Assembly (NCBI GenBank): GCA_028023455.1
Contig: JAQFVV010000001.1
Location: 1,302,001 to 1,366,000, forward strand
Direction of reading: 5' to 3'
From: Epiperipatus broadwayi
Lineage: Eukaryota > Animalia > Onychophora
DNA: 64,000 nt
Under the pieces are notes generated by a model. The model was not told the origin of the DNA and searched no databases. It saw only the letters and a program-made list of their open reading frames with translations. Each line of letters starts with the position of its first letter. The stretch's first letter is position 1. Positions 606 to 58,299 of this stretch are shown here, piece after piece. The position numbers were made by a program, and so were the translations under genes.

Positions 606-3600
606 GTGATGACAAACTATGTCAAGAATTGTTGCCATCCAAGATTGACATATTTCGAGGCCATCAAAAGAGGGATGACCTACGAACTAGTTCTAAGCAG
701 CTCCAAAGAATTCCAACTAGCTAACCTGGAGGCTACAAAACAAACTTCAATATGTAAAACAAGCAAAACAGGAGAGCTACCAAACTCGAAAACTGAATGA
801 TATCGTTGTGGAAAAATTGGTCACATTGCACGTGAATGCAGCTGGAAAAATGCGGGAGAGTGGGACACTTGGCGAAAGTTTGCCGTACTAAAAGCAAAAC
901 TTCTGGTAATGATAAATCTCTAGGAAACAGATATGCCAAATTGGAACTTTATACTGAAATAAATAAGACAGAGACCAAAAGCAGTCGACAAATAATGTTG
1001 GCAGTAGAGATATGTAACAAAGCTGTAGAAATGGAAATAGACAGTGAGCCGGGGTATCCATATCTCAAAGGGATTGGTCTGAGATAATTAAAACCAGCCA
1101 AAAGTAGTTAAAACAGAGCTCAAGGCAAATGGGAATCTGATTCAAATAACTGGGGTTGTAGAAGTTACGGTAGCCATTAAATCACCAGAAAAAACAGCCT
1201 ATATATTGTCAAGGGCAATATAGCATCCCTATTAGATAGGGAATAGTTTATCCCCTTAGGCATTAAAATCTGTATTGTAAACAAAATTAACACAGAAAGA
1301 GAAATAAAGCTTAAATTCCCTAAACTGTTTGCCAAAGAGCAGGGACGAATCAATATTACAGCTGTGGAAATTGAGCTTTGTGAAGGCGCAAAAGCAGTAC
1401 ACTGCAAGCCTAGAAAAAATACCTTTTGCTATGAAATCATGAGTTGAAGAAGCTTTAGAGGATATGGTAAAGAAAAGCGTATTGACTCTGGTCAAAGACT
1501 CAGAATGGGTTACTCCTATAGTTGTAACAAAAAATGGACAAATCCGAATATACGGGGACTATAGGCTGGCTGTAAACAAAAGTATGGCCAAAAGCCCATA
1601 CCCTGTACCAAATGTGAGAGATATTAGCTGGATTGGAAACCGCAAATTACTTCGCAAAGTTGAATTTAAATACTGCTTTTCATCAGATCCCGGTGACAAA
1701 GGAAACAGTGATGCTCCTTATCATAACAACACATGGGATTGTATGATTATAAATTGTCTACCTTTCGGTGTAAAAATCGCCCCGAACACTTTTCAAGCTA
1801 AAATAGATACGCTGTTAGAGGGAACAATGTCGTATTTTGATGGTATATTGGTAACAGCGGACTCTGAAGCGGCATTACAAATTAAATTAGACAAAGTTTG
1901 CGAAAGGCTAGAAAAGTTTGATGCAAAACTAAATATGCAAAAGTGTATTTGGTATGCTAAAGAGATAAAGTTTTTAGGACATTATATCAAGCACAGGAGT
2001 TAGACCCGATCTGGGTAAAATTAAAGCTATAAAGGCGCCACCCCCCACAAATGTCAAGAAACTGCAGGCTTTTTTTGGATTGGTTAATTTTTTTGAAAGT
2101 TTTCTGAAGAGAAAGACACAGCCATGCTTTTGTACGAGTTACTTTGCAAAAATCAACGATGGTGTTGGAAGGAACTGCAAGAGAATGCTTTTCAGAAAAC
2201 AAAAGCACTGCTTACGTCAAGTCCCAATTGTTAGTACATTACAAGAATAACCTCAATGTAATATTAACAATGCATGCATCCGAATACGGAAATGGGCGGT
2301 ATTCAGTCATCTGTCGCAGAATAGCGAACGCCCAATAGCATACATTTCTAGAATGTTGTCAAAAGCTGAAAAAAATTACAGCCAACTGGACAAGGAGGAT
2401 TGACCTTTATATCAGCGGTTCGAAAATTTCACCAATACATTTACGGCCGATCAATTAAAATAACACCACTGTTCTTTGTTAGGGATATTCGCCAATAAAA
2501 AAGCCACACCTGACCATCTGAGCTCGCGAATGATTCGCTGGTATAAGTTGCTGTCTTCATACGATTACGAATTAGTATATCAGAAAGGTAGTCAAATAAA
2601 GCATGCGGACACTATGTCGCATATCAGATGTAACAGAAAAAACTGACACTGAAGTAGACATTATTTAGATTATAGGAAGCCGGAAATTATAAACAGCAAC
2701 ACTATAGCCAGCTGGACTCAAGAAACAGCCGTAATCTAGATACTCATAAACTGGATTAGGAAAGGATGGCCCAGAAAACGACCCCACTATTTACATGAGT
2801 CTCTATGGAATATGCGCCAACAACTATCAACGTTAAAGGGATGCATAGTAATGCAGATAAAGTATTGGTTCCCCCCGTCGGACGTTCTAAAATATTAGAA
2901 ATGTTACACCAAGGGCATCCAGAGATTGTTTGTGCCAAAGCGCTAGCCCGCATTTATGTGTATTGGCTGGACATGGATACAGAGATAGAGATGTTCATTA
3001 AAAAATATAAATCTTGCCAATCAACCATAAACACACTTCCAAAGAAATTTATATCATGGCCCAAAACTGATAAACCTTGGAGTCGGGTCCACATAGACCA
3101 TGCTGGACAATAAATGGTAAATTAATTTTAGTATTGATAAATACTGGCTCAAAATGGACAGAATATAAGATAGCGAAAAATACTAGTTCAGCAGAACTAT
3201 TCGTATTCTAAGCGTTTCAGACTATGGAACTGCTTTTACTTCTGACGAATTCGAGTCATTTGTGGAAGAATGGAGAATAAATCACATCCATTCTTCGTAT
3301 CACCCGGAATCTAATGGGTTCACAGAAAAGGGCCGTCCAGCATTTGAAACTAGTATTAAATAAAGCCAATCTATCCGAGGTGCTAAACATTGCAATGCTG
3401 CACCAACATATTACGCCAATCATCCACTGGGAAATCACCAGTTGAAATATTGATGGGCAGAAAATTGCGTAAGAAGCTGTCCATTCTGATGCCTGATCAT
3501 GGAAAACCACCAACAATCAAGAAAAATACTTATGCTGCTGGGAATAACAAATGGGTACGCGATACACTATGCAAGACATGGACAGATGGTATAATAACTA

Positions 3601-12454: not shown

Positions 12455-13037
12455 AAACCACTGAACATCACATGATCACTATTTCTTATGCTTGAACATA
12501 ACTGTTAATAAAAACCGGAAAATCTCCATACAGTAGTGCCACTCAGTGCAAGCCAGAGTAATCAAGGAATGCCAAAAGGCTTGGGTTTAAAATCCCTATC
12601 TAGTGCCTATTCATCCAATATCCCCAGACTAGTCTCTAGCTTGCGGTTTAATACCAATCCTGCCTAATAGGATAGTGGTGGCTATGGTTATTAAAGAACC
12701 AAAAACACCAAAATGTATGGGTGCTGAACTGAGTTCAAATCTATATGACTATATAAGCTAATGAACTTTGAAAATATTTTGTTTTCAATTTTATTCTCAT
12801 AGTTTTGTAATTAAGCAGTGGTAAAAGATGGCTGCTGGAGGGTTGCATTAGATCTTAAGATCTAGGTGCAGTGCTTTCAGATCCAAGGCTCCGCACTGAC
12901 GAAAGCCATAAGCTAGAAACTAGTCTGGGGATATTAGATTGGTAGGCATTAGATAGGAATTTTATGCACAAGCATTCTGGCATCTATTGATTACTCTGGC
13001 TTGTATTGAGTGGCACTACTGTATGGAGAGTTTTGCC
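12455..13037. mobile_element. HH-B hammerhead repeat insertion (antisense fragment plus sense unit)
   Basis: Flanked by the direct repeat ATTAAAGTTT (12445-12454, 13038-13047). Similar to 36686-37297 and 58101-59236. Confidence 0.88.
12890..12931 (+). ncRNA. Type I hammerhead ribozyme motif (HH-B), partly degenerate stems
   Basis: TCCGCA CTGACGA A-AGC cataa GCT-A GAAAC TA GTC TGGGGA. The core is intact; there is one G.G mismatch in stem I. Confidence 0.8.
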
Positions 13038-14170: not shown

Positions 14171-15255
14171 AAAAACAGATAGTAGATCATGTTGGAAAAA
14201 ATGTTACTTATATGATTGCTAATGTATCATTTTAAAATTATCTGATAAAAAAAAATTAGAAAAAATGACTTTCTTTATATTGTCATGAGATACTTTGTCA
14301 ACAATTTGAGCTTATCAGTTATGTCAGTACGTTCAGGTAAAAAATAAATTTTAGTATAAGACAATGTATTTAAAAAGAAAATAAAAAGCTAGATAGCCTT
14401 AAAGAAAAAAGGTTTTCTTAATGTAACAATATACATCTTAATTCTGATAAAGAATACAAATTATTTGGGGCAAATTAAATTCAAACACTTTCTAATAAAA
14501 TAAGGTAGCAAATTTTACTGATATTACATCAGTTTTCTGGGTTTTGATATGCTTTAACCATTGTAACTGAAATAAAATGTTAAAAGCATATTTGGAAAAA
14601 AAATTTCAATCTATCTTGCAGATGCTTATTAATAATAAAAATCCAAATGGAGTTCGATATTGTTATTTTCATAATTTTTTTAAAGTTTCAAAGTGGAATC
14701 TGCATATTTTTGGTAAGATTGATGCTGTTATACGTTTTTGAATCATCTGTTATGATTTACTATGATCAAGAATTTCTTAATATCAAGTTTTTATTTTTTT
14801 TTGTCTTTATTGCTTTGGCATTGGTATGATTGATTTGCAGATGATTTTTGGCATATCATAAGCATTTTCCCTCAGAAAAGAATTATTTTGGCACAGCAAC
14901 TGTTGTCTTCGCATGGGAATGTGATAATGCAAGTAGCTAATTAAATTTATTATCGCAAAACCATTTTTAATTTAATCTAATTTTTAATTATTTTGTACTT
15001 GGCATTAAAACAAGACTTTAATGCTCTGATTTGTAGCAGAAATATTAGAATTTGACCTACAAAGGTTTTTAAATTGAAGTTCAATATTTCATGAAATAAA
15101 AACTTGTTAAGAAATATGAGCTGTTGTTTTTGTGTAAACTAATTATATATATATAATTTTAAAAATATAATATAAATTGCTTTAATTATTTTTTTATACT
15201 TGCAATATTTCCATATTTTTTTAAAATGTGAATAAATGCAAAAATATAATTTCAG

Positions 15256-15479
15256 CAAAGGAACAGGCCTAAATCTGGATATATGAGAAAGCAACCTGAC
15301 ATCACTAGTAACATGAGAAGTATTTTAGTTGATTGGTTGGTAGAGGTAGCAGAAGAATATAAGCTGCAAACAGAAACACTTTATTTAACAGTATCTTATA
15401 TTGATAGATTTTTATCAGTTATGTCAGTATACCGGGGAAAATTACAGTTAGTGGGTACAGCCAGTATGTTTCTTGCATC
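15256..15479 (+). CDS. CycA: Cyclin A exon (start of cyclin box), 224 nt, phase 0 to 2
   Basis: TTCAG acceptor and GTAAGT donor. Translates [75 protein letters not shown] (MRAIL-type cyclin A motif). Confidence 0.97.
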
Positions 15480-16400
15480 GTAAGTATTATTAAAACATCT
15501 TTTTTATAGTATAAATTTAAATACATTTTATTTACTACAACTTTAAAACTGACCTTGTATAAAAGTTGGAACATGTATTTTTAATTTGGTTTATAAATAT
15601 TCTATTTTTCTTACTTTTTTTTTTTAAAGAAAAATTGGAAAATTTGAACAATTTTTTGATAAGTAAATGGACCATTCCATTTAATAAGTAATGTCAAAGT
15701 AAACATTTTTGCTATGCGTTACTTGTTAAATCCAGTCATCTTCATTAATGTTGAGAATCAGGAAATGCCAGATTTTTTTACCATATAATTGCTTGCTGTC
15801 ATTTGAAAAATGCTTTCTCTGGTAAATTAGAAATGTGGTCATTGTATTTTATATTACTAGAATTAAATTCATTTTTTCCTATTATTAGAGAATTACAGAT
15901 GATATAAGAAAATAGAGCTGGAAGAAAATAAAAACCTTAAAAATCTGAAATATTCTGATAGCGAAAGGAAATTAATTTTATTTCTACTATAAGATTATAA
16001 GTAAAGCTGATATCATATGAAAAGATGTGTTTTAAATGCAGAGGTAATACATACAATTAAATCTATGAAGAATGGAAAAGCTGGAAATGATGTTGTGTAT
16101 ATATATGTGTAATCTGATAATTAAATATTAGTAAATATGGCAATCAAAAATTTTTTTGAAAATTAACACAAAAAAAAGATGAATTGATGTCAATATGTGA
16201 AAATAGGCATTGTTTACAAGTTTATTGAAATGATTCTTCAGTAATTGATTTATGAATTATAATAACTGCTTGAGATTTGGTTGATCCATTAATAAGTTTA
16301 TGAAGTAGAAGAATGCAAAATAGTATAGGTATCTAAGAAAAGTAAAAATAAGATATAAATTACAACCATGCCAATCTTATCGATTTTCGGTACTTTGGTA

Positions 16401-20000: not shown

Positions 20001-20087
20001 ATTTATAACAATTTATTTTATCCTGTTTTAAAGTTTTTTACATAATCTAATATTTTAAGAATTTTGTAAAATATTTAATATTTTCAG

Positions 20088-20163
20088 TAAATTTGAAGAA
20101 ATTTATCCACCTGAAGTCGGTGAATTTGTATATATTACTGATGATACATATACAAAAAAGCAA
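20088..20163 (+). CDS. CycA: Cyclin A exon, 76 nt
   Basis: TTTTCAG acceptor and GTAAGT donor. Completes the Ser codon, then [25 protein letters not shown]. Confidence 0.97.
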
Positions 20164-22211
20164 GTAAGTTGGTATTAAAATGTTGATTACTTTATAAAAT
20201 AATTATTAATTTCTTTTCAACATTCAGAATTATTTTAGTTTGCTAATTGTTTTAAAGTAATGTGTAAAACAATAGCTTTCTAATGTAAACATAATGTTAA
20301 TTATATTGCTTTTAAAGGAATATTATTATCATATGAAAATACTAGGCTTATTTTTTTCCAAGATTTTTTGTCTCCATCAGTTTATATATATATTCGCTGA
20401 AGAAAATTGCGGGGCGGGGGGGAGCCAAGTTTCAACAAAAAAAAAAGCCTGGATTACCAAACTTTAGCCAAAATTAAATTTGTGTTTCTTTTACTACTTT
20501 TTACTTTGTTTTGTTTTTTCCTTTATCTATTCATTTCTTTTAGGGGTATAAAGGAGTGGGGTACAGTTCGAAAACCGAACGCGACAAATAAGTCCAGGAT
20601 CCCAGCCGCGTTGCCCATACTTAAAGCTCCGAATAAATATTTGTCCGGTCTTTTATCGTGCTTTTTGTCAATTGATTATAAACATCTCTAAACAAATTTA
20701 TGTTTTTTAGGGATCTCAGTTGCTGAAAAAAATATCTCCCTATTTAATCTGCCCCCGCGAAAGAAGAAAGCCAGAAGAACAAAAAAACCCGAAAGCCTAT
20801 TCCTCCGCAAGGGTAATCCAGTCCCTTCTACTACTACATCAATAATCCATCCTGATCAACGCATAAATAACCTAGATTCCTCCCCTAATAATTTATACCC
20901 TCCCGCTAGTTTACTTTTTATAATTAATTTAGGAAACCAAAAATCATAATAAAACAAAAGAACAAAAAATAAATAAAGGAAAGATTTTACAAAATAAATA
21001 CATAAAATTATAACTAATTATAAAAGTATCGGCAGATAGAATAATATTGCATTTTTAAATCTGGAAAGTTTTATTTACTGTTCTAAATTTTAAGTTTTGG
21101 TTTTAATGGTTCTCTTCATATATTCTTGCGTTTGAGGTTCCAGTGGTCCTGGCTTATTTATCCTCGAGTTTTTTAGTGAGTTGGCCTCAATGTAGAAGAT
21201 CTCATTTTTTTTTTTTAGCAGAACTGAAGGGATTGAGCTTCTCTTTTTAATCCCTCAGCACTAACCCTAGTGTTACATCGTAATAATATAAAATAGTCAC
21301 TGATTAATAATTTCCAAATTTTCCTTTTATATTAATGTGAAGGATTGAATTTAATACGTCGTGCGATGTTTTCTGGTCTCCATAGGGTTTCTTCTTATTT
21401 GCTACAGTTTCTATTGTTTTTTATCTGACGGTGTTTTTCATTTAAATGAAGGCTGGTTTAATTTAACTAATTAAATATTTCCATTTCTGATTAATTAACC
21501 TGTTTTCCAAATCAAAAATATATTTAAAGATAAATTTAAAGATATAATTTCATCTCCAAATCTTTTTAAAATTTAGTTTTAAAATACTTTTTCTTTAATA
21601 AAGTTTTATTTTAATAATTTTTCATTATCTGTGCGATTTAATTAATATATAAGAGTTTAAGATGATATTTAATTTCAATTTTTAATTCTTAAAGAAAATT
21701 TAAAAAATTTTTTTTTTTTTGAATTTACTTTCATGTCTTAATAACGTCTATGCTCGTTACAGTATATTATTAGTTATATATGTACTACATTTTGTCTGTG
21801 CTTAGTCTTAACTTCCCAATTTGTAAATTTCTGTAAATATTATTATATTATATTTTTATTTTGCACAGCTATGATTATGAAGCCATAGAGCTTTGAAAGC
21901 GCTAAGCTTTAAATAAATTTAATAACATAATTTCTTTAACGAGCGTTATAAGCGCATAAGTATTAATATTATATATTTTATACAGTAGTAAAAAAATAAT
22001 GGTATTCCATTTGAACATAATCTGCCTAACTAATCAAATTTGCAATTTAGATAAATCCAATTATATTTCTTTATGTGAAGTTAATGCTGTTATGGCTAAA
22101 GTCCTGAGCATTTGTTGCGTAGAAAAAGTAATTTTTTTGGTGAACAAAAGTCGTCTGTCTGCCCCCCCCCCCCAAGAAATATAAAAGTAAAAAAGCCTGG
22201 TGAAATCCTAG

Positions 22212-36006: not shown

Positions 36007-36135
36007 GTATTACGAATGGAACATTTAATTCTTAAAATTTTATCTTTTGATGTGGCTACACCTACAATATATTGCTTTTTACAACGCTACTGTAAATTGG
36101 ACAGGTTAAACAGTGAAACAGAAGCTCTTGCATTA
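36007..36135 (+). CDS. CycA: Cyclin A exon, 129 nt
   Basis: TTTTAG acceptor and GTAAGT donor. VLRMEHLILKILSFDVATPTIYCFLQRYCKLDRLNSETEALAL. Confidence 0.96.
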
Positions 36136-36685
36136 GTAAGTCAGTCCCTTTTTTGTAGTTAACTTTTATAAGCTAGAGAAATATGTAGTCTACAGTTATT
36201 TGTTTTATTTTATTAATAGATACATCTTTTAATGACATACTTTTTTGCATATAAATGATGTAAGCTTCAATTATTACTGCTCTCTTTTGTTAATATTTCC
36301 TAGCTTTTACTTGGCTGTACCATTAATATTTTATATTGCTCTATTCACTTCTCACATTTTTTCTTAATTCTTAAAGACAATATTTAATTTATTTTAAACA
36401 CTTCTTTTTTTTTCTTTCTTAATACATCGTCACTTAACTTTATCTGCATAATATTTTATTCTTTTCACTTAATGAATCCTGTCCGCCTTCTTTCTGGAAT
36501 GCTCTTTTCTTTTGTTATAGAAATCTGATTTCAAAACCATTATCTGTTTAAAATGACTAATTTTTATCAGTGATGGCTAACTTTGATACAACCTATTAGA
36601 TAAATGATTTAAGAATAGTCCTCTGTGTCATTTACTTATTTAATTTTTCTAAATTTATAGTGTGTGCACATGAATATGGTAAATA

Positions 36686-42000: not shown

Positions 42001-43439
42001 TTACACCTAGGTAACATTTCAAATTTGAGCTTCTTTCTTTTGATCTCAAGATGAGACAATTTCAAAATTAGAGTTCCCACCAAGCTTAAACTCCATAATG
42101 ACAAACAATCATTTATAAAAACAAAATTGCTACAAAAATATATATCTGATTCAACAGATTTTCTCCCTTAACACAAAATTGTAAAAAAAAAAATAATTTG
42201 ACAGATTTAACCCTTCTTCCTTTCAATATATAATAAATGTAAATTTCTGTATGTAATGTACACACATACTTTATCATTTCAAATCATTCATAAACTGACA
42301 TTAAATAATCTAATTGCTAGCTTAGTAATTATAACCCTAATATTTAAAATTAAATCCTTAGCTTTTAAATCCCAATTACAATTATAGAAAAGCAAAATAG
42401 AAGTATAGAATAAGATATTAAAATTGATCAAGCATAGGCTAGTTTTAAAGAAAGTTTAATATCTGAAATTTAAAAGTGACTAACTAAATAGCTTTTATAA
42501 CACACACTGCCTATACATATGCGTTATAACTTTGCATTTTAACAGAAAAATTAAATATTGAATAGTTTAAATGTGTGTATTACCTTTCTATCAACACAAA
42601 CAAATAAAGAATATAATTGTTGACCCACTCTTTCTGTCTAAAGCTTTTAGAACTTGATCTTGTAGGGTTTAAACTTGGATGCCCTACAGCTTCCTTTTTA
42701 GATAAAAATGTGATGATGATTTTTGTTTTACATTTTCTTACATGCACATTACTATAAATTTAGCTAATGACTAAATTGTAATGGCACAATATATATGGGT
42801 TTATAAATTATAATTAAATGCATATTCTATTAAATAATTATTTAATTAATATGTAAGAAATTACTTTGATCAAATTTTGAATTGTGAACTGATTTAAGAG
42901 AGAGAAAACTGAAAAAAGCATATTGTGTTTGTATAGAAATATTAGTTACATTTATAGACAAGTTTTCAGAGATAACATTTCAGTTATTTGTTAAGTCTAA
43001 TCAATATAATTTTAAACCATATACATGAAGTTTCCTCATGGGAACAATCATAATAAAATCTTTTATACATCAAAATGTTCAAATTAGTATATGTATGTAG
43101 ATATAATGTATTCTTATTAGAATCTTTCATTTTCTTCTTTTTTCATCACTATCAATATAATTTTTTATCTCAAATCTTTTAGGCAATCTTACATTGCGTC
43201 TTATTCCCTCTGTTTATTCAAAATAAAGTCTAAATAAAGATAAGTAACTAATATAATTTTAAATTGTTTATAATACAGTGTGTATATATATATGAAAAAC
43301 AAAAAAACACAAGTTAAAAAACTTGCTAACCCTTGTATTTATGATAACAGATGGCGTTCTACCAAAAACACCGTCAAGCGTAGTTTTCTGTTTACATAAA
43401 CGTCAGAGCGAGCATTCACTATCTCTAACTTTAATTCCA

Positions 43440-43483
43440 CTTTCAGATCATGATTTCAACCTATTTGCTATCGTCAGTGAAAG
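43440..43483 (-). ncRNA. Type I hammerhead ribozyme motif (HH-A)
   Basis: Minus strand: CTTTCA CTGACGA TAGC aaatag GTT GAAA TCATGA TC TGAAAG. Confidence 0.85.
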
Positions 43484-44166
43484 ACAGGAATAAGAAACTA
43501 GATCTAAACACAAACTCAGAGCATTTATGAAACAGTTTCTATTCAGCTTGCAAGCGTGAATCTTTTAGACACGTTAATGTCTTCAAACTCAGCATAGCAA
43601 GCCAGGTAGCTACATGGGTCTGATCTCAGTTCAGCATCACCACATAGTAGAAGCCTCTGCAATATACATCATTGCAAGAAAGACCTCAAAGGTACATTTA
43701 TGAAAAACAGAAAAACACAAGTTAAAAAACTTGCTAACGCTTGTATTTATGATAACAGATGGCGTTCTACCAAAAACACCGTCAAGCGTAGTTTTCTGTT
43801 CACATAAACGTCAGAGCGAGCATTAGATAGTGAATGCCCGCTCTGACGTTTATGTGAACAGAAAACTACGCTTGACGGTGTTTTTGGTAGAACGCCATCT
43901 GTTATCATAAATGCAAGCGTTAGCAAGTTTTTTAACTTGTGTTTTTTTGTTTTTCATAAATGTACCTTTGAGGTGCAATGATGTATATTGCAGAGGCTTC
44001 TACTATGTGGTGATGCTGAACTGAGATCAGACCCATGTAGCTATCTGGCTTGCTATGCTGAGTTTGAAGACATTAATGTGTCTAAAAGATTCACGCTTGC
44101 AAGCTGAATAGAAACTGTTTCATAAATGCTCAGAGTTTGTGTTTAGATCTAGTTTCTTATTCCTGT

Positions 44167-44210
44167 CTTTCACTGACGATAGCAAATAGGTTGAAATCAT
44201 GATCTGAAAG
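44167..44210 (+). ncRNA. Type I hammerhead ribozyme motif (HH-A copy 1), predicted cut after 44204
   Basis: CTTTCA CTGACGA T-AGC aaatag GTT GAAA TCATGA TC TGAAAG. Stem I is 6 bp plus a distal ATTCC/GGAAT. Stem III is the palindrome ATCATGAT. AUC triplet. Confidence 0.87.
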
Positions 44211-44574
44211 TGGAATTAAAGTTAGAGATAGTGAATGCTCGCTCTGACATTTACGTAAACAGAAAACTACGCTTGACGGTGTTTTTGGTAGAACGCCATC
44301 TGTTATCATAAATACAAGCATTAGCAAGTTTTTTAACTTGTGTTTTTTTGTTTTTCATAAATGTACCTTTGAGGTCTTTCTTGTAATGATGTATATTGCA
44401 GAGGCTTCTACTATGTGGTGATGCTGAACTGAGATCAGACCCATGTAGCTATCTGGCTTGCTATGCTGAGTTTGAAGACATTAACGTGTCTAAAAGATTC
44501 ACGCTTGCAAGCTGAATAGAAACTGTTTCATAAATGCTCAGAGTTTGTGTTTAGATTTAGTTTCTTATTCCTGT

Positions 44575-44618
44575 CTTTCACTGATGATAGCAAATAGCTT
44601 GAAATCATGATCTGAAAG
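44575..44618 (+). ncRNA. Type I hammerhead ribozyme motif (HH-A copy 2), predicted cut after 44612
   Basis: CTTTCA CTGATGA T-AGC aaata GCT-T GAAA TCATGA TC TGAAAG. Confidence 0.9.
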
Positions 44619-44958
44619 TGGAATTAAAGTTAGAGATAGTGAATGCTCGCTCTACGCTTGACGGTGTTTTTGGTAGAACGCCATCTGTTATCATAAATAC
44701 AAGCGTTAGCAAGTTTTTTAACTTGTGTTTTTTTGTTTTTCATAAATGTACCTTTGAGGTCTTTCTTGCAATGATGTATATTGCAGAGGCTTCTACTATG
44801 TGGTGATGCTGAACTGAGATCAGATCCATGTAGCTATCTGGCTTGCTATGCTGAGTTTGAAGACATTAACGTGTCTAAAAGATTTACGCTTGCATCTGAA
44901 TAGAAACTGTTTCATAAATGCTCAGAGTTTGTGTTTAGATCTAGTTTCTTATTCCTGT

Positions 44959-45002
44959 CTTTCACTGACGATAGCAAATGGCTTGAAATCATGATCTGAA
45001 AG
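44959..45002 (+). ncRNA. Type I hammerhead ribozyme motif (HH-A copy 3), predicted cut after 44996
   Basis: CTTTCA CTGACGA T-AGC aaatg GCT-T GAAA TCATGA TC TGAAAG. Confidence 0.9.
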
Positions 45003-45118
45003 TGGAATTAAAGTTAGAGATAGTGAAAAAAAAAAAAACTACATTGAGAAAGCCATTTTATAATGCATATTACTATTGCCTAAATTGTTATTTTAATGGT
45101 TGTATTTTATATTTTTAG

Positions 45119-45232
45119 TATCTTTGCGAATTAACATTATTAGAAGCAGATCCATATTTAAAGTATTTACCTAGTATGGTAGCTGCAGCTGCTGTGGCAT
45201 TAGCAAACTGTACACTCCATCGGCAACCCTGG
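45119..45232 (+). CDS. CycA: Cyclin A exon, 114 nt
   Basis: TTTTTAG acceptor and GTAAGT donor. YLCELTLLEADPYLKYLPSMVAAAAVALANCTLHRQPW. Confidence 0.97.
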
Positions 45233-57306: not shown

Positions 57307-58257
57307 GTAAGTAATATTTTAAAATTTGTAGTATCTGTTCAGTATCTTAATTTTATATACTTGTGCATGATTATGGAATACTATTGAATAATTATCAAAG
57401 ATTCAGTATTATATACTATAAAAATTAACAGATTATTAAATATAATATTTGTAATAGTTTTTTTTAATTGATTGCTTTAACAAATTCTTTTATAATATAA
57501 ATTAAACAAAAGATTTTAATATTATAAATAAATGTAACACCATATAGCTGGCTTGAAAGGCCATCATTTTAGTAATAGTTTTTTTAATTGGTTGGTTTAA
57601 CAAATTTTTTTTAGTTCGTGAATAAAATCCTCGCAATCAAATTAAGCCTCTAAATTAAAATTTTAAATACACCTGTTATATTTGATATGTGAATTTGACA
57701 GTATTCCGGACAACTATTAATGGTGTAATTACTTCCTTCACATAAAATATTCCTAGCGTAATAGTTTTTTTTTTAATTGGTTGTGAATTTGACATGTGAC
57801 AGCCTTGTGGAGAAACATTCACATGGATTTTATATATGAGATTAAGAACAATTATATTTCTAATTTTTGTATTTTTATATATATATTATGAGCTCCCCAT
57901 TAAGTTCATTACAGTAATGAGGATTCAGTTTTTGACCACATTTCCTGAGTAATTGTGAAAATTTTTTAAAACTATCGTACAATATACTTAGTATTTGACA
58001 CTATCAGAATTAATTGCTGATCTCAAATAATTAGAATAGGATATTATTATAATTAATACATGCATGTAGCTACACTACAAGCACATACAAACAATATATA
58101 AACCACTAAACATCACATGATCACCATCTCTTATACGAGCACATAATTGTTGTAAACAAAGGCAAAACTCTAGTGCCACCCTGTGCCAACCAGAGCAATC
58201 AATGGATGCCAGAAGGCTTGTGCACAAAATCCCTATCTAGTGCCTACTCATTCAATA

Positions 58258-58299
58258 TCCCCAGACTAGTTTCTGGCTTCTGGCCATCATCAGTGAGGA
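58258..58299 (-). ncRNA. Type I hammerhead ribozyme motif (HH-B)
   Basis: Minus strand: TCCTCA CTGATGA TGGC cagaa GCCA GAAAC TA GTC TGGGGA. Confidence 0.9.

Follow-up and report, generated by a model that had tools for sequence, protein, structure and literature searches.

The 64,000-nucleotide (nt) stretch of the Epiperipatus broadwayi genome analysed here (assembly GCA_028023455.1, contig JAQFVV010000001.1, positions 1,302,001 to 1,366,000 of the forward strand; hereafter the window, numbered from its first letter) carries, within an intron of a cyclin A gene, a short array of tandem units with type I hammerhead ribozyme motifs. Tandem repeats that carry hammerheads have been described before in animals, under the name of non-LTR retrozymes (LTR, long terminal repeat). 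The region is very probably one insertion of a young, very abundant, non-coding non-LTR retrozyme with a unit of approx. 408 nt, which travels as a non-autonomous passenger of Penelope-like elements (PLEs).

Tandem Repeats Finder reported a single array (43825-45027; period 408, 3.0 copies, 93% matches), and a repeat finder revealed an inverted arm (43285-43824) that is 97-98% complementary to 43833-44365, with 8 nt separating the two arms. The window copy is composed of approx. 1.3 antisense units placed head-to-head with approx. three sense units (Table 1); unit 1 and the initial 161 nt of unit 2 (up to 44365) mirror the inverted arm. A first-pass annotation of this DNA, made from the letters alone, had described three sense units of 401, 408 and 384 nt; the latter two lengths hold, whereas the first unit is 5'-truncated from the palindrome centre and measures approx. 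380 nt. The upstream inverted arm of approx. 1.3 units, which it had also recorded, is not incidental but forms part of a stereotyped, PLE-type head-to-head structure. The outer end of this arm lies at unit position 161 (the 'tail' end), its strict terminus TGAAAAAC beginning at 43293; with (TA)5 in front of position 161, the window copy has a canonical left end. The period-408 unit itself is a short tandem repeat with one type I hammerhead per unit and with no LTR, primer binding site, polypurine tract or open reading frame (ORF); its GC content is 35.5%, and no stop-free stretch in it exceeds 68 aa.

At least 835 candidate places in the genome resemble the unit at 97-99% identity, and the exact hammerhead pattern of the family is matched 23,500 times in the 5.6 Gb (reversed-pattern control, 0), which supplies the genome-wide copy number that the first-pass annotation had left to be determined. 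A pattern for sister subfamilies, which have a longer helix III of 10 nt, is matched another 17,016 times genome-wide (control, 0). The architecture of the insertions was compared in 30 family loci and 30 sister-subfamily loci (L001-L060). A partial tandem with an adjacent inverted, 5'-truncated copy is present in the window copy and in nearly all of these loci, and the arms follow the order minus then plus (antisense left, sense right) in 19 of the 19 two-arm loci counted among the matches listed. The unit position at which the arms meet on the inside is asymmetric and changes from insertion to insertion. Two fixed unit positions, 110 (...CUGUUAUCA) and 161 (...GUUUUUCA), mark the outer ends; one end lies at 110 and the other at 161 in all 23 insertions with both ends readable, and a 51-nt 'tail' (110 to 161) is found on one insertion end only. 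On either side of the family insertions listed, the outer end runs into (TA)n. Genome-wide, 702 matches were obtained for the position-110 junction with (TA)n (control, 0) and 9,294 (control, 11) for the position-161 junction, which the family has in common with the sister subfamilies.

Each of these features has a counterpart in the published descriptions of PLEs. PLE insertions comprise partial tandems, an inverted 5'-truncated copy and a tail on one end, with a preference for (TA)n microsatellites (PMC8557442), and biochemical work has shown that both strands of the target are cut and extended and that reverse transcription (RT) starts at two adjacent internal sites, the interval between which corresponds to the tail (PMC11167929). 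Because its head-to-head arms, one-end tail and (TA)n targets match these hallmarks, the family inserts with a PLE-type signature. Every unit also contains a hairpin of 8 bp, placed immediately 5' of the position-110 terminus, in which sister subfamilies have exchanged U-G for C-G and G-C for A-U with pairing kept; this hairpin is a candidate recognition or initiation element for the reverse transcriptase. A scan with ARAGORN and for bacterial promoters and terminators returned nothing relevant except this conserved hairpin.

Long inverted arms and short, similar termini (TGAWAAC...) beside TA-rich DNA would also be expected of a foldback or MITE-like (miniature inverted-repeat transposable element) DNA transposon, or of a locally made palindromic satellite, in which the likeness to a hammerhead arose by chance, and such an origin would agree with the fact that Rfam recovers no hammerhead. 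However, two different fixed ends, one of each per insertion, combined with a variable, asymmetric junction are unlike the terminal inverted repeats of cut-and-paste elements, whereas the same pattern equals that of published PLE insertions (PMC8557442, PMC11167929). Chance likeness is also difficult to reconcile with the helix I covariation, invariant core and free N7 position described below, and this origin is most improbable.

PLEs are themselves plentiful in this genome. A genome search with the GIY-YIG model PF01541 returned 10,241 first-look candidates, and all of the 150 that were scored lay above the cut-off. Several of these sit in open PLE frames of 800-901 aa; in one of the loci (L074), YVDD and GIY-YIG motifs can be read in the ORF. 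GIY-YIG scores 39 bits in the genome search, and one PLE 3' end adjoins (TA)n. Potentially active PLE RT/GIY-YIG proteins thus appear to be encoded in the genome. Pfam hmmscan gave no match on the intact PLE ORFs, probably owing to their extreme composition: these ORFs (L074:601-3303 and L075-L078) are extremely C-poor on the coding strand, with 117 C in 2,703 nt. It should also be noted that the PLE 3' untranslated regions (L074:3600-3660; L078, approx. 310 nt after the stop) contain the motif UUGAAAA and a 6-bp stem followed by GAAACGUU, which in L078 ends approx. 20 nt before a (TA)n run. This motif is possibly a hammerhead with a variant core, in which the change at positions 3 and 8 would be compensatory.

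The second line of evidence concerns the hammerhead. The pattern CUGA-N-GA, 13 nt, GAAA, UCAUGA, UC, UGAAAG is found in the window at 44173, 44581 and 44965 (+) and at 43477 (-), i.e., four matches compared with 0.00 expected from 100 shuffles. When read by hand, each copy has a helix I composed of the 6-bp CUUUCA/UGAAAG, a UGU/U internal loop and a distal 5-bp stem AUUCC/GGAAU, and all four copies have the core CUGA(C/U)GA and GAAA, the closing A..U pair and the C17 cleavage site. Helix II is a 3-bp AGC/GCU stem (A-U, G-C and C-G pairs). The annotated full type I hammerhead of each sense unit is borne out by pattern matches and intact cores, except that in hammerhead 1 the middle pair of helix II is broken. 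Helix III had been annotated as palindromic, and its 8-nt sequence AUCAUGAU is indeed a perfect palindrome in the 408-nt family; the 10-nt helix III of the sister subfamilies, AUCAGCUGAU, is still a perfect palindrome after a GC insertion. Such a palindromic helix III is stable only once two hammerheads pair as a dimer, and published work reports it as typical of those metazoan type I hammerheads that act as dimers (PMC4209133, PMC7229834). Cuts are predicted after 44204, 44612 and 44996, which places them 408 and 384 nt apart.

The sister subfamilies are homologous to the family across the entire unit at approx. 80% (judged by eye), i.e., they are diverged enough for the structure to be tested by covariation, for which 20 representative hammerheads from the family and sister subfamilies were aligned (alignment A1). 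In the 6-bp helix I, 98.3% of cells are paired, and two-sided changes occur in three of the six pairs, with C-G, U-A and U-G alternating; when the partner strand was slid by 1-3 columns as a control, only 26-48% of cells were paired. The distal helix I stem varies, yet it stays compatible with pairing. The three pairs of helix II are invariant in this alignment, so that helix II gives no covariation test. The hammerhead core is likewise invariant across subfamilies, and N7 is the sole core position that varies within the family, 26 of 41 full units differing there from the query. N7 is the one position of the hammerhead core without a sequence requirement. In these 41 units, variable sites amount to 0.7% of the hammerhead without N7 and to 1.8% of the non-CpG sites elsewhere in the unit. 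The first-pass annotation had made its proposal depend partly on the core and stems being conserved beyond the rest of the unit, and this is the pattern that emerged; the retrozyme-like kind that it had proposed is likewise borne out by a high-copy tandem family with helix I covariation and a core that varies only at N7. Given that core and stems are conserved beyond the rest of the unit, the comparative evidence indicates that the hammerhead motif is real and selected. The unit RNA is also predicted to fold more stably than its shuffled versions (z = -3.7).

Several observations weigh against a functional hammerhead and against a PLE passenger. First, Rfam scans returned no hammerhead match, either in the whole window at the gathering score or in subsequences of 1.9 kb and 111 nt at E <= 10. 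This negative result counts for little because a second, different hammerhead-like motif in the window (58245-58293, family B), used as a control scan, was missed in the same way; for the 408-nt family, the likely explanation is a helix III that is not a hairpin, combined with a short, AU-rich helix II. The microRNA-family matches that Rfam does report at the locus merely reflect the long hairpin. Second, helix II is short. The annotated 3-bp stem is correct in length, but positions 10.1/11.1 form an unpaired U-U mismatch in the 408-nt family, which leaves the closing pair, in type I hammerheads usually G-C, unpaired. Opposite U11.1, position 10.1 is U in the family and A or G (A-U, G-U) in two sister subfamilies, and PLE hammerheads have been described in which a base at the 5' end of helix II is left unpaired (PMC4209133). 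Third, the active fold is not favoured thermodynamically: the monomer hammerhead fold has -8.0 kcal/mol compared with a minimum free energy (MFE) of -14.6 kcal/mol, and the double hammerhead has -26.0 kcal/mol compared with a dimer MFE of -32.9 kcal/mol. Helix I is recovered by the folding, but the inner part preferentially pairs in another way; compared with a pair of monomer hammerhead folds, the double-hammerhead fold gains 10 kcal/mol. These values are not decisive, since tertiary contacts and protein assistance lie outside the thermodynamic model, and they fit published accounts in which hammerheads of this type are weak cleavers by themselves, act as dimers or depend on protein (PMC4209133, PMC7229834, PMC11167929).

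The remaining points of this kind concern expression, the insertion end and the partner. Four public runs, none of them on record as RNA, contain the repeat, all as contigs and of uncertain kind (RNA or DNA); their contigs comprise variants of the family consensus and sister-subfamily sequences and offer no usable ends or joints. In one of them (X1), the contig depth over 43250-45100 is very uneven compared with X3 and X4, reaching approx. 51,000 near 43373, although contig depth is not interpretable and the kind of run is guessed. The right end of the window copy has neither the position-110 terminus nor (TA)n, i.e., the canonical right end is missing. The A13 run that had been taken for a tail is present at 45026-45038, but it is not a feature of the family, in which the canonical ends are 110 and 161 beside (TA)n. 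Because the A13 junction occurs once in the whole genome, the right end is a private truncation or aberrant event and not a family-typical retroposition tail; poly(A) retroposition of the SINE/LINE type (short or long interspersed elements) was ruled out as its source, the junction being unique genome-wide and the family ends being flanked by (TA)n. Finally, the unit showed no blastn similarity to the 24 PLE loci sampled from more than 10,000 candidates, and its autonomous partner was not found there.

Within this context, it is a serious possibility, to which we accord slightly less than even weight, that the window copy is dead: a decayed, inert insertion that yields neither cleaved nor circular RNA, hammerheads being important only in source copies. 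Unit 1 and the inverted arm carry G44190 and C43460, respectively, where every contig from the four public runs has C and G, and these changes disrupt the middle pair of the 3-bp helix II in hammerhead 1 and in the inverted-arm hammerhead. Unit 3 has lost 24 nt, the right terminus is missing, and the active fold differs from the predicted MFE. Moreover, published PLE-type hammerheads are poor cleavers in vitro and can require protein (PMC4209133, PMC11167929), and eight of nine Xenopus retrozyme dimers were uncleaved (bioRxiv 10.64898/2026.07.22.740005). However, hammerheads 2 and 3 are consensus-like, adjacent (384 nt) and in sense orientation in a transcribed gene, so that transcription of cyclin A should each time provide RNA on which dimeric cleavage could act. 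Hammerhead 1 is located within the 540-bp palindrome, and a transcript of 43285-44365 would form a duplex of approx. 540 bp that buries it. Since the 408-nt RNA requires hammerhead 1, with its helix II mismatch and its position inside the palindrome, whereas a 384-nt RNA (44613-44996) requires hammerheads 2 and 3 alone, the latter is predicted to be the more likely product, if any RNA is released from the cyclin A pre-mRNA.

That the array lies in cyclin A follows from its neighbours. Exons of the cyclin box are found upstream on the same strand (approx. 15250-15480, 20059-20175 and 36007-36159), and the exon behind the splice acceptor AG (45117-45118) encodes a Cyclin_C domain with cyclin A2 structures as its best matches, in agreement with the initial assignment; because cyclin exons flank it on the same strand, the array sits sense-oriented inside a cyclin A intron of approx. 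9 kb. The acceptor is 122 nt downstream of the last predicted cut (44996), as had been annotated. This proximity and the sense orientation might suggest that the host uses the insertion, either by letting intronic hammerheads cut cyclin A pre-mRNA and thereby tune expression or by feeding the 540-bp hairpin, a near-perfect inverted repeat that would be transcribed, into a small-RNA or RNA-editing pathway. However, the window copy is one among thousands of near-identical young insertions scattered genome-wide and bears no mark of conservation or special status, and cleavage of an intron need not alter the spliced product. Host use is very unlikely, and to the cyclin A gene the insertion most likely amounts to neutral cargo in an intron.

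Table 1. Features of the retrozyme insertion and of the adjoining cyclin A exon (window positions)
Feature	Position	Strand	Basis
(TA)5 flank at left insertion end, target microsatellite	43283-43292		Sequence reading; same (TA)n flanks both sides of family insertions
Inverted, 5'-truncated arm of approx. 1.3 units, antisense to gene	43285-43824	-	Inverted repeats I1, I2 and I4; BLAST layout (L001); position-161 junction
Hammerhead motif of inverted arm, sense only in antisense transcript; helix II mismatch C43460	43434-43491	-	Pattern search, contig comparison
Palindrome centre, 8 nt joining the two arms	43825-43832		Inverted repeat I4
Sense unit 1, 5'-truncated at approx. unit position 22-30	43833-44204	+	Repeat finder, BLAST layout
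Hammerhead 1, predicted cut after 44204; G44190 instead of family C	44159-44216	+	Pattern search, contig comparison
Sense unit 2, 408 nt, 97-99% identity to genomic copies	44205-44612	+	Genome comparison, BLAST layout
8-bp hairpin directly 5' of position-110 terminus	44278-44297	+	In every unit: also 43877-43896, 44663-44682, 43761-43780 (-), 43353-43372 (-)
Hammerhead 2, predicted cut after 44612; equals family consensus	44567-44624	+	Pattern search, alignment
Sense unit 3, 384 nt, lacking 24 nt internally near 44653	44613-44996	+	Sequence reading, BLAST layout
Hammerhead 3, predicted cut after 44996; single A-to-G change in loop II, helices intact	44951-45008	+	Pattern search
Atypical right end: unit positions 1-31, then A13 (45026-45038)	44997-45038	+	Sequence reading; junction pattern once in genome
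Cyclin A exon, Cyclin_C domain, downstream of array	45119-45232	+	Cyclin_C E = 2e-11; best solved-structure matches all cyclin A2

The PLE-passenger reading leads to a mechanism that could account for the insertion structure. A unit RNA, either multimeric or a circle produced by hammerhead cleavage and ligation, would be bound in trans by a PLE RT/GIY-YIG protein, whose endonuclease would open a (TA)n site on both strands. The resulting DNA ends would then prime cDNA synthesis at fixed internal start sites, one at unit position 110 and the other at 161, and the two cDNAs would converge through one or more units and be joined at an arbitrary point. This would leave tandem units in head-to-head arms, with the 51-nt tail at a single end. 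In the cyclin A pre-mRNA, hammerheads 2 and 3 could pair and release the 384-nt RNA, and the inverted arm together with unit 1 would form the 540-bp hairpin. As for the template, the units of the window copy are no more similar to one another than to units of other loci, and this comparison speaks weakly against a single monomeric circle.

A more specific form of this mechanism is offered tentatively, as a possibility rather than as the expected answer: a coordinated, two-ended PLE integration in which both ends of each (TA)n break are extended head-to-head from unit RNA and in which the split between 110 and 161 arises because a dimer of the RT/endonuclease assigns one start site to each strand. 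Such a division of labour is suggested by the fact that one end is at 110 and the other at 161 in each of the 23 insertions. It should be noted that in vitro, the use of PLE start sites was reported to be the same on both strands, and the strand-specific dimer goes beyond that report. Nonetheless, the strict one-tail rule and the uniform head-to-head order are cleaner than we found described in the literature and may be informative about PLE integration.

The window contains further sequences of related kinds. Hammerhead-like sites of a family B lie at 12896(+), 37149(-), 58293(-) and 59086(+) and have CUGA(C/U)GA, GAAA, the palindrome ACUAGU, a helix I of CCUCA/UGGGG and a variable 4-bp helix II (AGC/GCU, GGC/GCU or GGC/GCC). 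Those of a family C (6869(-), 7389(+) and 12115(-)) lie inside a near-perfect palindrome and have a helix II of GUGC/GCAC or UUGC/GCAU, their helix III being palindromic and AU-rich. In addition, a 179-aa ORF at 1464-2003 (+) matches the reverse transcriptase domain RVT_1 (E = 8e-12) and is part of another retroelement remnant.

With regard to classification, the features tested place the element among the animal non-LTR retrozymes, understood as non-autonomous PLEs with dimer-type type I hammerheads. Animal retrozymes have been proposed to be non-autonomous PLE derivatives on the basis of vertebrate co-occurrence and phylogeny (2026 preprint, bioRxiv 10.64898/2026.07.22.740005). The insertion structure described here supports this idea and adds a new line of evidence for the retrozyme-PLE link, namely, thousands of young insertions carrying the full PLE integration signature. 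If coordinated two-ended integration were true, more than 40,000 hammerhead units would constitute direct structural evidence that PLEs mobilise animal retrozymes. The finding is useful as evidence on mechanism and will not surprise the specialist, and the family could serve for studies on the start of PLE reverse transcription and on the formation of retrozyme arrays.

Among known systems, the hammerhead models of Rfam (Hammerhead_1, RF00163, and related models) share the core and the helix I-open topology with the family when these are compared by hand, although no match was obtained at the thresholds tried. Classical hammerhead satellites (newt satellite 2, Schistosoma Sm-alpha and cave-cricket pDo500; cf. 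PMC7229834, PMC4209133) resemble the family in that their units, 300-500 nt long and arranged in tandem, carry a type I hammerhead whose helix III is short or palindromic; double-hammerhead cleavage is a feature of these satellites. They are described mainly as long arrays, whereas the present family consists of thousands of dispersed insertions of 1-10 units with defined ends.

The animal non-LTR retrozymes of Cervera and de la Pena (2020, PMC7229834) share with the family a GC content below 50%, a type I hammerhead per unit, no LTR, no coding capacity, a very high copy number and, as in axolotl, hammerheads of the dimer type. They differ in that their expression products are linear and circular RNA, whereas the window family is known here from DNA. 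In addition, the text of that paper does not use the word 'inverted' and treats target site duplications briefly, whereas the insertions described here have stereotyped head-to-head arms and defined termini. It is in the PLEs and their non-autonomous derivatives (Craig et al. 2021, PMC8557442; Frangieh et al. 2024, PMC11167929; Li et al. 2026, preprint) that this architecture finds its counterpart. Unlike PLEs, the window family has no ORF, its tail measures 51 nt rather than the 30-40 nt reported, and (TA)n targeting has been reported for Naiads, which are themselves without canonical hammerheads. Nonetheless, PLEs and the window family have in common partial tandems, an inverted 5'-truncated copy, a tail on one end and AT-rich or (TA)n targets, as well as a hammerhead near the terminal region and two adjacent internal RT start sites.

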